A stretch of DNA of 64,000 nt, taken from NCBI GenBank assembly GCA_039096225.1, contig JBBPEB010000002.1, positions 868,001 through 932,000 on the forward strand, in the 5' to 3' direction. The translations under genes and the position numbers were made by a program. Below, one piece after another: positions 29,271-34,529 of the stretch. The DNA comes from Blastocystis sp. Blastoise (Eukaryota; Protista; Bigyra: Opalinata). Numbering within the stretch: position 1 is the stretch's first letter; every line of letters begins with the position of its first letter. The notes beneath the pieces were generated by a model. It was not told the origin of the DNA, ran no database searches, and worked only from the letters and a program-made list of their open reading frames with translations.

Positions 29271-30689
<1,419 letters not shown>

Positions 30690-30914
30690 AATAATTTATA
30701 TATATTTAAATCATAATATTATTCATTATTTCCAATGAATTTAAGTTATATTAGTTCCTCAATCTTTTTTTGTTTACATCATTCTTCTTATCTACACAAG
30801 TTAAATACTAGAATTGTTCATTTATTCACAGTTATGTTTTTTTTAATATAAAAATACAAAACAATATAGTTTTACACAATTATTTTGGTATATAAAATGA
30901 ATATAACTATAGAA

Positions 30915-32391
30915 TCAAATCTTAGGTTCTGAATTATTCGCTTCATCTTCTTCTTCTTTTTGTTTCTTTAAATTCTCAATATATATCTTTGATTCTTCAT
31001 CTAATTTATTCATCATTTGCTCTATTTCTTCTTGACCTACACATCGTTGCTTCTCTATATCCTCAATAAACGGTATCAATTCTGTAGACTCAATAAAAAC
31101 ACCACAATTCTCTAATTTCTTTTGTAAAAATGGATCTTTCACGGTTAAACCCTATTTATAAATTTATTATTTAGTAAAGAAATATTGTTATTATTATAAG
31201 CATAGTAATGATACTATGTATAATAGTAATGATTATTATAACTATAATAATATGTATATAATAATTTTTTTTTAAATAATAATAATAACTACAATAATAT
31301 GTATATAATAATTAAAATAATAATAATAACTACAATAACTATGTATATAATAATTAAAATAATAATAATAACTGCAATAACTATGCTAATAATATTAATA
31401 TATACATCTTCCATCGAAGATACGATTCCCTCCGTGATCCCCCGACAAAGTCCCCTACTGTCAACGACAGGACCCCCACACATGCCTTGGGTCAGATTCT
31501 CTTCAGTCTTCGCAAATATACGGTGATTAGAGGCCGCTAATAATTGACCAGGCACTTTCTATATAGATATAGAATATATTCTATTTTAGAATATACATAA
31601 AGTATAGTATACTATATTATACTATACAATAATAATATACTTCAGTATGAATAATTATAATCATATATATATATACTCGTGGTAATAAGATACTAACATC
31701 TTCTTGTTTCTCTTCATCATATTTCTCTTTTAAATCATGACCTAAAAATAATACTTTCTATATAAGTTAACACATATATATAACATAAAAACTAATTAAA
31801 ATACAATAAAAACTGTTTTTATTTAATATATAATAATGATAATAATGATAATAATATATATATATATACTTCTCCTTTTTGAACGGGTTGTTTTGATAAT
31901 TCTAATGGATTTATACTTATACCCATTTCCTTTAATTCACTTAATGCCTGACCCTCTTTATTCAAATGAATCACACACACATCTCTATATTTATATATAT
32001 AAAATTGAGAAAATAAAAACACAAATATATATAGAATATACTTTGAAGGATGAGAATACAACCTATTATCTGCTCCAAGACGCTTTATAATTTGTCCATT
32101 CATCATATCTCGTAATTCTATTGTAAAAATGACATGATTCTCATGAATTGCCTGTAACCAAGGATATTTATCCGTTGGATAGTAACCAGGAAAAAGATAA
32201 GGAGCTGTCACATGGAATGGCGCAAAGAAATGATAATTTGTCTCCCAACTCTTATCAGCCTTAACTGCAAAGGTTGATCCACGACTCAAAACCTCGAATT
32301 TTTCCATACCTAATTCTGGAACACGAAACCAAGATGTACATGATAAAACTATTTTATTCCAATTCTTATTTATCAAAGATATTGTACTCAT
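30915..32391 (-). CDS. Trypsin/chymotrypsin-fold peptidase with a Cys nucleophile, 5 exons
   Basis: Ordered motifs GSTFAV, FAPFHV (His), HPSKDVCVIHL (Asp), VLFLGH, LTQGMCGGPVVDSRGLCRGITEG. Confidence 0.75.
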
Positions 32392-32796
32392 TGTGAAAAA
32401 AAAAAAGAAAAAAAATATTGCCTTTCTTTACTTTTTTATTCTTTATATATGTGTCTATAATTTTAATAAAATAGTATAAAATTCTACATTGTCAATTTTA
32501 CATCGCTATTTATGTGTAGAAATTAATAAAATATGTAGTTAACATATGACAAAATGTGAATGTGGCAACAAAGTTGATATAGAGATGAGTTTATTATATA
32601 TATTGACTATAATGAATGAAAAAAATAATGAATGATTATTAGAACTATATACATTCGTTACACAAGAAAATAGGCGAGATAATTTACAAGAAAATAAAAA
32701 TTTGATTTGAATAAAATTCATTAGAATAGTAAAGCAAAAGAAAATAAAACAATAAAAAAAAAGAAGAGAAATATAATGAATTAAAATAGAATGAAT

Positions 32797-34529
32797 TTAC
32801 TTTTCTTTCTTTGTTTCTTCTTCTTCTCCTGTATGTTCTTCCTCTTCCTCTTCATACATATGATCAGGGCATTCTGAACAATAGCAAGTTAGAATATCAT
32901 TCATATTCTGTCCTTCTATAGGGAAAAACCAACGAGAACAAAAAGGTTCACCCATCATATTAACAAAACAATCATAACGATTTTGCTATAAAAGAATAAA
33001 CATCATTATATATATGATTAAGAATATATTATATTTGTAATATATAGAGAAATATAGAAATAATAATAATAATAAAAATAAACATACTTCTCTGTTTTCA
33101 AATCCACGTTGAGATAAATACGAAGCATAGGACAAATCATCTTCAATAGATTTTAACTATAAGTATATTAATAATAATAAATATATAATAATAAAAAATA
33201 TATAATAATAAAAAATATATAATAATAAAAAAAAATTAATAATAATAAAATATTTAATAATAATAATAAAATATTTAATAATAATAATAAACTATATACT
33301 TGATCATGAAGCATGATAGCTAAGAAGATGATAAATATAATACTAAAGAATACTTCTAATGCTAATAATATAGAGGGAAATAAAGACCAAGAAATGATAG
33401 GATAGTGTAAATTATGTTGCTTTATAAAAGGAATAGCGGCTAGCATAGGAAACACACGTTCAAATGGTACCCAATAAACATCATCAGACTAGAGCAATAT
33501 AAGTATTATAAGGAGAGTAATAATATTAAAATAATAACTATAAAAGAAACACTCTGGAATATATATAATACATAATAATAATAGAATAAAAAGAAATAAA
33601 AACAATAAATATTATTAACATAAAAACACACATCATTTTCTCTTATATATATTAATATATATATACATTAGTAACTAGAGAATAGATTTGATATAATTTT
33701 AATGTTCCCAGTATAAATCCATAAAGTTCTCCAATCAAAGCATATACTAAAAATAAAATAAAATATTTTTGATTTCTGGCACCAATACAATTATTAACCC
33801 AACTATATATATAAAATAATAATAATAAATCATATATATATAAATAATAATAATAAATCATATATATATAAATAATAATAATAAATCATATATATAAAAT
33901 AATAATAATAAATCATATATATATAAATAATAAAATAAATCATATATATAAAATAATAATAATAATAAAATATACGGGCAATGATGGTCTTGTTTTAATA
34001 CACAAACACCACAAGTACTACAATGATAAGCACGAATAGGTCTCAATGAATCACATTGTCTATATACATATATAAAACAATATTATTGAACAAAGTATAA
34101 ATATATTAATAAATTATAGATACTCGCAAATCAGACGTTCAGCACGAATTGCCTCATACTTGGAAGCAGGATCTAACTAAGCAATTGATAAGAAAAAGTG
34201 AATAATTGTTTATATTTTATCGAATTTACATGTAAGTCCACAACTGGTGAACCTGGATTTGTAAATGCAGTAGCAAATTCACACCAAAAAGTCATAACTG
34301 AAAAGAAAAGGAAAACACATATATGAAAGGCTGCCCATAAAGGATTTTCAAATTGATCAATAATAGCGTACTTAACTGTACAAAAAGCTACAAAAGAAAT
34401 TTGAAGTAATCCCTATATATATACACACATTAAAAATAATCGAAACGATAATAAAATATTAGATACAAGTGGAAATGCCATCCAACCCATAGGACTGTTA
34501 TATATACACCAGCATCGACTATTCGCCAT
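32797..34529 (-). CDS. DHHC-type palmitoyltransferase
   Basis: [57 protein letters not shown], with transmembrane segments. Confidence 0.93.

Follow-up and report, generated by a model that had tools for sequence, protein, structure and literature searches.

A Blastocystis gene encodes a predicted PDZ-less, HtrA-like protease of a cellular PA-clan family with a putative cysteine nucleophile

Introduction

Can a protease of the chymotrypsin fold that is encoded by a cell, rather than by a virus, use cysteine as its nucleophile? By the usual rule, cellular chymotrypsin-fold proteases use Ser, and Cys occurs in this fold only in viruses (PMC4576821). The question is raised by a gene in a 64,000-nt stretch of contig JBBPEB010000002.1 from Blastocystis sp. 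Blastoise, a gut protist of tortoises; this stretch is referred to here as the window. The gene lies on the minus strand (32391-30915), has five exons with a coding sequence of 936 nt, and encodes a protein of 311 amino acids with the motifs APFHV, KDVCVI, and GMCGGPV. A preliminary description, made from the window sequence, had taken these motifs to hold a His-Asp-Cys triad and had proposed an uncharacterized "3C-like" cysteine protease resident in the cell. Here we argue, with a probability of roughly 0.7, that the product is a PDZ-less, HtrA-like thiol endopeptidase belonging to a cellular family of PA-clan proteins with a Cys nucleophile, and that it is not a relative of the 3C proteases.

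Results

The triad is conserved across a family found in several protist lineages

Homology searches started from individual exons and from a 190-amino acid frame reading through intron 1; these led to a shortened NCBI protein, P0001, then to its cluster, and from there to P0151 (KAK8815367.1; hypothetical protein, Blastocystis sp. "Blastoise"). The splice model of the window gene matches P0151 at every letter, and this record served as the query in subsequent protein analyses. Using phmmer over 1.84 billion cluster representatives, we found 434 proteins at E<1e-3, including 211 at E<1e-10. The best 150 of the 434 relatives and P0151 were aligned to a family hidden Markov model and the triad residues were tallied. 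His-Asp-Cys was present in 129 sequences and His-Asp-Ser in two, with the remaining 20 being fragments in which at least one column was missing. Counting only sequences that cover a given column, His60 was His in all 150 and Asp118 was Asp in all 145, while position 209 was Cys in 130 and Ser in 2 of 132, with no third residue. The Cys noted in the preliminary description is thus near-invariant. G207 and G210 of the elbow were invariant and P212 was found in 119 of the 132 sequences covering that column. Other invariant or nearly invariant residues were P64, Y71, G161, G222, and E225, the last within an "EGIVP" segment.

The two Ser members fell apart from each other in an LG+G4 tree, which is unrooted and has weak deep branches. 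Each adjoined a Cys member, with Shimodaira-Hasegawa-like approximate likelihood ratio test (SH-aLRT) values of 99 and 86, a placement that needs two changes. The simplest reading of these sequences is that they represent two Cys-to-Ser reversions on a background of approximately 100 Cys members. Because the Ser members lie apart in the tree, each as sister to a Cys member, position 209 behaves as a working nucleophile. As part of the best explanation, Cys would be the ancestral and conserved state of an old protist family.

In 30 cluster look-ups, on which the taxonomic picture rests, family members came from at least five major protist lineages. Named stramenopile members include Blastocystis, Nannochloropsis, Tribonema, Chrysoparadoxa, chrysophytes, and the diatom Fragilaria, and further members are from the cryptophyte Geminigera and the glaucophyte Cyanoptyche. 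A Nannochloropsis protein (KAM3575880.1) carries Ser as its nucleophile residue. Amoebozoa are represented by Arcella, Planoprotostelium (PRP81413.1), and Balamuthia, and heteroloboseans by Willaertia. A subfamily of 440-520 amino acids (P0045, P0083, P0107, P0129, P0132, and P0143), which includes the Fragilaria protein, carries the elbow P-[EDG]-G-L-C-G-[GA]-P. One metagenomic family member adjoins an OPA3 gene.

The predicted fold and the sequence kinship point to HtrA-like serine proteases

An AlphaFold2 model built with a 102-sequence family alignment had a mean predicted local distance difference test score (pLDDT) of 93 and a predicted template modeling score (pTM) of 0.88. Residues 15-254 form beta-rich barrels, followed by two long helices (residues 255-282 and 285-305). 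The predicted structure is the two-beta-barrel chymotrypsin fold of the PA clan, and H60, D118, and C209 follow one another in the His, Asp, nucleophile order of that clan, with GMCGGP corresponding to its G-x-Nuc-G-G elbow. A Foldseek comparison with the PDB gave the same picture. The closest structures in the fold comparison were quality-control proteases, and no 3C-type chain occurred among the 50 best structural matches. Against viral models, Foldseek returned a mix of giant-virus Do-like proteases and phage and RNA-virus serine proteases, with 3C not favored. Structural neighbors in the ESM Atlas were Trypsin_2 clusters.

Sequence comparisons were in line with this scaffold. Pfam Trypsin_2 (PF13365) matched P0151 with an E-value of 1.9e-4, and 68 of 102 family members matched it at E <= 1 (best E 2e-12). 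From its sequence, P0151 appears to be a distant Trypsin_2 relative that the Pfam model does not formally capture. Single exons and the 190-amino acid read-through open reading frame (ORF) gave nothing useful in Pfam searches; the Trypsin_2 match emerged only with the 311-amino acid protein. Peptidase_C3 had marginal matches in 6 of 102 family members (best E 0.072) and none in P0151 itself, while PDZ was matched neither in P0151 nor among the listed family-level Pfam matches. A single-sequence phmmer search against the PDB gave no significant match (E 0.21). Among PDB sequences, the family profile retrieved serine proteases of the HtrA/Do, Spl, and similar types and nothing else, with marginal E-values. 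In these alignments, H60 pairs with His in the HtrA sequence "TNSHVV", D118 with Asp in "D[IL]AV[IL]K" of HtrA/Deg5 (for example, "DIAVIK"), and C209 with Ser in "GNSGGP".

These results separate two meanings of "3C-like". The cellular trypsin fold with His-Asp-Cys, and with it the catalytic type shared with 3C, holds up, whereas kinship with 3C does not; the term can describe catalytic type only, because the scaffold is HtrA/Deg-like. As an internal control, the same genome contains a canonical HtrA-type/Trypsin_2 gene (C20:281505-282477). Since this gene keeps GNSGGP, the Cys nucleophile is not a genome-wide oddity.

Gene structure and transcripts

The window is AT-rich (23.6% G+C) and comes from a genome of 33.3 Mb in 34 contigs. 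Tortoise Blastocystis genomes have 21-23% G+C and long, variable introns, with that of Rus-B comprising 33.3 Mb in 33 contigs at 23.1% G+C; the paper describing them makes no mention of proteases (PMC10690189).

We examined RNA contigs from two runs of two studies, one from the organism itself and the other a poly(A) gut metatranscriptome; such contigs show the presence and structure of a transcript, not its level. Contigs of both runs are spliced at 32042/31984, 31677/31558, and 31406/31151, as modeled, and in both, exon 3 directly follows the complete 115-nt exon 2. Both also have a poly(A) tail at approximately 30870. Because these spliced, polyadenylated contigs come from two studies, we accept expression of the gene and all of its exon joints. 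A second strain has 12 listed differences from the window gene, 11 of them synonymous and one resulting in S48N.

The full transcribed gene, from ATG to poly(A) site, occupies 30870..32391 on the minus strand, as do all features given below, and its assignment rests on the gene model, the identity with P0151, the spliced RNA contigs, and the poly(T) end at 30870. Exon 1 (32042..32391) encodes residues 1-116 plus 2 nt and contains the conserved N-terminal SWF..PE.GM segment and the predicted catalytic His. Its end is fixed by the RNA joint 31984/32042 and by a paralog without the intron. His60, the CAT codon at 32212..32214 within APFHV (which starts at residue 57), is the putative general base of the triad, as judged from family conservation and the HtrA alignment. 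Intron 1 (31985..32041; 57 nt, GT-AG) is in frame, contains no stop codons, and interrupts the codon of Lys117; it is supported by the gene model, the RNA contigs, and the paralog. Exon 2 (31870..31984) encodes residues 117-155 in the gene model and RNA contigs. It includes the presumed catalytic Asp118, the GAT codon at 31981..31983 within KDVCVIHL (which starts at residue 117), identified by family conservation and the HtrA/Deg5 alignment.

Intron 2 (31758..31869; 112 nt, GT-AG) is defined by the RNA contigs in which exon 3 adjoins the full exon 2. Exon 3 (31677..31757; residues 156-182), assigned from the gene model, conservation, and RNA contigs, carries the KVLFLGH strand with the near-invariant Gly161, and is followed by intron 3 (31559..31676; 118 nt, GT-AG), for which the RNA joint is 31558/31677. 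Exon 4 (31406..31558; residues 183-233), also supported by the gene model and RNA contigs, encodes the nucleophile elbow and then the G..EGIV strand. GMCGGP (31469..31486; residues 207-212) is, by conservation and alignment, the likely oxyanion-hole and nucleophile elbow and the counterpart of HtrA GNSGGP. Within it lies the TGT codon of Cys209 (31478..31480), the presumed nucleophile from the family tally, which is also present in the RNA contigs and the paralog. Intron 4 (31152..31405; 254 nt, GT-AG) is supported by the gene model, the paralog, and the RNA contigs; it holds an AT-rich tandem repeat of approximately 50 nt whose copy number differs between the two genes, the window copy having approximately 50 nt more of it than the paralog. 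The coding part of exon 5 (30915..31151) encodes residues 234-311 and the TGA stop codon and, by the gene model and structure prediction, contributes the last barrel strand and a long, helical, Lys/Glu-rich tail. The 3' untranslated region (30870..30914) extends to the poly(A) site, marked by a T run ahead of 30870 in contigs of both runs. The preliminary description had placed His at 32212-32214, Asp at 31981-31983, and Cys at 31478-31480, which proved exact, and the four introns it had counted are all GT-AG and backed by RNA.

A paralog in the same genome

A near-identical paralog of the window gene (30915-32391) is located on another contig of the same genome (C4:2399012-2400389). The exons of the two copies show 12 differences, 11 synonymous and the other causing S48N, while their introns differ by 16 substitutions and 128 gapped positions. 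The mostly synonymous exon changes, set against the diverged introns, therefore indicate purifying selection on both copies. The C4 paralog precisely lacks the 57-nt intron 1, which independently confirms this splice, and it retains the TGT codon of Cys209. Its intron-2 acceptor is ATATAA, compared to ATATAG in the window copy (AG to AA). Because of this AA, the NCBI model of the C4 copy (P0001; 300 amino acids) splices to an AG further on and is 11 residues shorter, with the near-invariant Gly161 among those lost. A Pfam search with this P0001 model, 11 residues short, did not match Trypsin_2.

The duplication shared with C4 covers window positions 29463-32406 at 92-99% identity. One boundary is abrupt, 15 nt ahead of the protease start codon, and from there the duplication continues downstream across the convergent neighbor gene, at least to window position 29463.

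Localization and neighboring genes

The preliminary description had seen no obvious signal peptide, and P0151 indeed has none, its first 22 residues being modeled inside the fold. Among 147 family members starting with Met, 27 have an extension of at least 15 residues ahead of the conserved N-terminal segment. In many cases the extension is Arg-rich and acid-poor, resembling a mitochondrial presequence, which is only a lead that the family may be mitochondrial or organellar in some lineages. The Blastocystis protein P0151 has no such presequence-like extension.

The upstream neighbor, also on the minus strand, encodes a DHHC palmitoyltransferase (window 32797-34046); in this gene, two adjacent ORF pieces match overlapping parts of the profile, with AT-rich repeats between them. 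The downstream convergent neighbor (window 29271-30336, plus strand) has a weak match to MAM33 (mitochondrial glycoprotein; E 7.9e-4). The N-terminus of this MAM33-like protein resembles a mitochondrial presequence (MFARSLAYRTLPLVSRL...), and one intron of its gene contains a long microsatellite of the TTTA type, readable as an (LFIY)n ORF (29936-30136). Neither neighbor bears on the function of the protease.

Discussion

Conservation and homology suggest how a PDZ-less, HtrA-like thiol endopeptidase of this kind would work. His60, positioned by Asp118, would activate the thiol of Cys209, and main-chain amides of the GMCGGP elbow would provide the oxyanion hole. Cleavage of the peptide bond would then pass through a thioester acyl-enzyme, the route taken by viral 3C-type enzymes. 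None of the observations that the preliminary description had named as grounds for giving up a protease (a non-trypsin fold, unconserved His or Asp, Ser in close homologs) overturned this reading. For the broader history, we give even odds to an ancient, eukaryote-wide cellular family of PA-clan Cys proteases, the first of its kind, that derived from HtrA-like serine proteases rather than from viruses, is possibly organellar in many lineages, and underwent natural Cys-to-Ser reversions.

Several points weigh against this interpretation. All named family members are labeled "hypothetical" or "uncharacterized", in keeping with the preliminary description, and catalysis is read from their sequences. 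The triad geometry relies on superposition of a predicted model on active proteases. The Trypsin_2 score of P0151, 22.6 bits, is below the gathering cut-off of 27.6 bits. Among the structural matches were trypsin-fold pseudoproteases and binding proteins, such as scabies SMIPPs and haptoglobin, although these have lost the triad. Finally, a Cys in the PA fold could serve some other acyl-transfer reaction.

This last point leads to the strongest alternative, that the same fold and triad belong not to a general endopeptidase but to an enzyme specialized in thiol acyl transfer or in processing. Candidates would be a highly specific maturation protease, an isopeptidase, and a ligase or transpeptidase acting on peptides. 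Cys nucleophiles in the PA fold are otherwise those of highly specific processors (viral 3C, NIa, and 3CL), the near-invariant P64, Y71, and E225 (in "EGIVP") do not occur in HtrA, and there is no PDZ domain for tethering unfolded substrates. However, our data point to no particular substrate, the DHHC and MAM33-like neighbors offer no operon-like clue in a eukaryote, and the closest structures are quality-control proteases. We therefore consider a specialized enzyme unlikely.

It is considerably less probable that the protein is a catalytically dead pseudoprotease or a binding protein that keeps only the scaffold. Inactive trypsin-fold proteins are common, and the structural matches included several. 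Nevertheless, all full-length members retain the His, the Asp, the nucleophile, and the G.CGG elbow, even though their pairwise identity with the window protein is just 23-37%. The only replacement of the nucleophile is by Ser, which is likewise competent and was acquired twice independently, and purifying selection is strong in comparisons with both the second strain and the paralog.

It is very improbable that the gene is a domesticated 3C-type protease, whether its source was an RNA virus or an endogenous viral element. The Cys nucleophile and G.CGG motif are common to viral PA(C) proteases, and the marginal Peptidase_C3 matches would fit such an origin. The viral enzymes (picornain 3C, potyviral NIa/TEV, coronaviral 3CLpro, and calicivirus 3C-like proteases) likewise combine the PA fold with a G-x-C-G-G Cys and a His base, and the Blastocystis family presumably shares their thioester acyl-enzyme chemistry by analogy. 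They are polyprotein domains, whereas P0151 is encoded by a stand-alone cellular gene in the nucleus, which is spliced from five exons, has start and stop codons of its own, and yields a transcript with a poly(A) tail. No specific kinship between the two was detectable by Pfam, among IMG/VR viral contigs, which contain no relative of the family, or by structure comparison. In addition, the strand after the nucleophile has the consensus G-x-x-E-G-I-V-P without a conserved His, unlike in the viral proteases. That the Cys is an artefact, whether of faulty sequencing, of a TCT-to-TGT mutation private to this gene, or of an incorrect gene model, can be dismissed, with TGT found in the genome, the paralog, and RNA contigs of two studies, Cys in 130 of 132 homologs, and RNA contigs and NCBI's own model in agreement on the gene structure.

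With the HtrA-like thiol endopeptidase as the preferred reading, the family can be set against its closest cellular counterparts. Deg/HtrA proteases (MEROPS S1C), which include DegS, DegP/DegQ, plant Deg1/2/5/9, and human HTRA1-3, have a trimer as their basic unit and use a Ser nucleophile in place of Cys209. They carry at least one C-terminal PDZ domain, with few exceptions such as Deg5, whereas P0151 has none and ends in a helical Lys/Glu-rich tail. The P0151 family also differs from Deg/HtrA in its own conserved N-terminal "SWF..PEQGM" segment and in the "EGIVP" strand. PDZ-less Trypsin_2 proteases do exist, such as Mycobacterium tuberculosis Rv3671c/MarP and the staphylococcal V8/Spl glutamyl endopeptidases, but all of these are Ser enzymes and secreted or periplasmic. 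In contrast to the PDZ-less Trypsin_2 proteins of bacteria and phages, the P0151 family has Cys, appears to be eukaryotic, and lacks a signal peptide.

The family has neither its own Pfam model nor a named member. In the full-text literature searched, an incomplete library, we found no description of a cellular PA protease with a Cys nucleophile or of the GMCGGP motif; the only match to "GMCGGP" was unrelated, and a search for Deg/HtrA proteins with Cys in place of Ser gave only papers on canonical Deg/HtrA. If the family is active, it would add a new cellular peptidase family and would mean that a Ser/Cys switch occurred in cells, independently of viruses. Its natural Cys/Ser sister pairs would then allow the tolerance of an active site to a change of nucleophile to be studied. 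An ancient, eukaryote-wide Cys family, if true, would overturn the rule that Cys in the chymotrypsin fold is confined to viruses. Medically relevant protists, both gut-dwelling and free-living (Blastocystis and Balamuthia), also have members of the family, and a thiol protease there could be a selective target if it has no animal counterpart.
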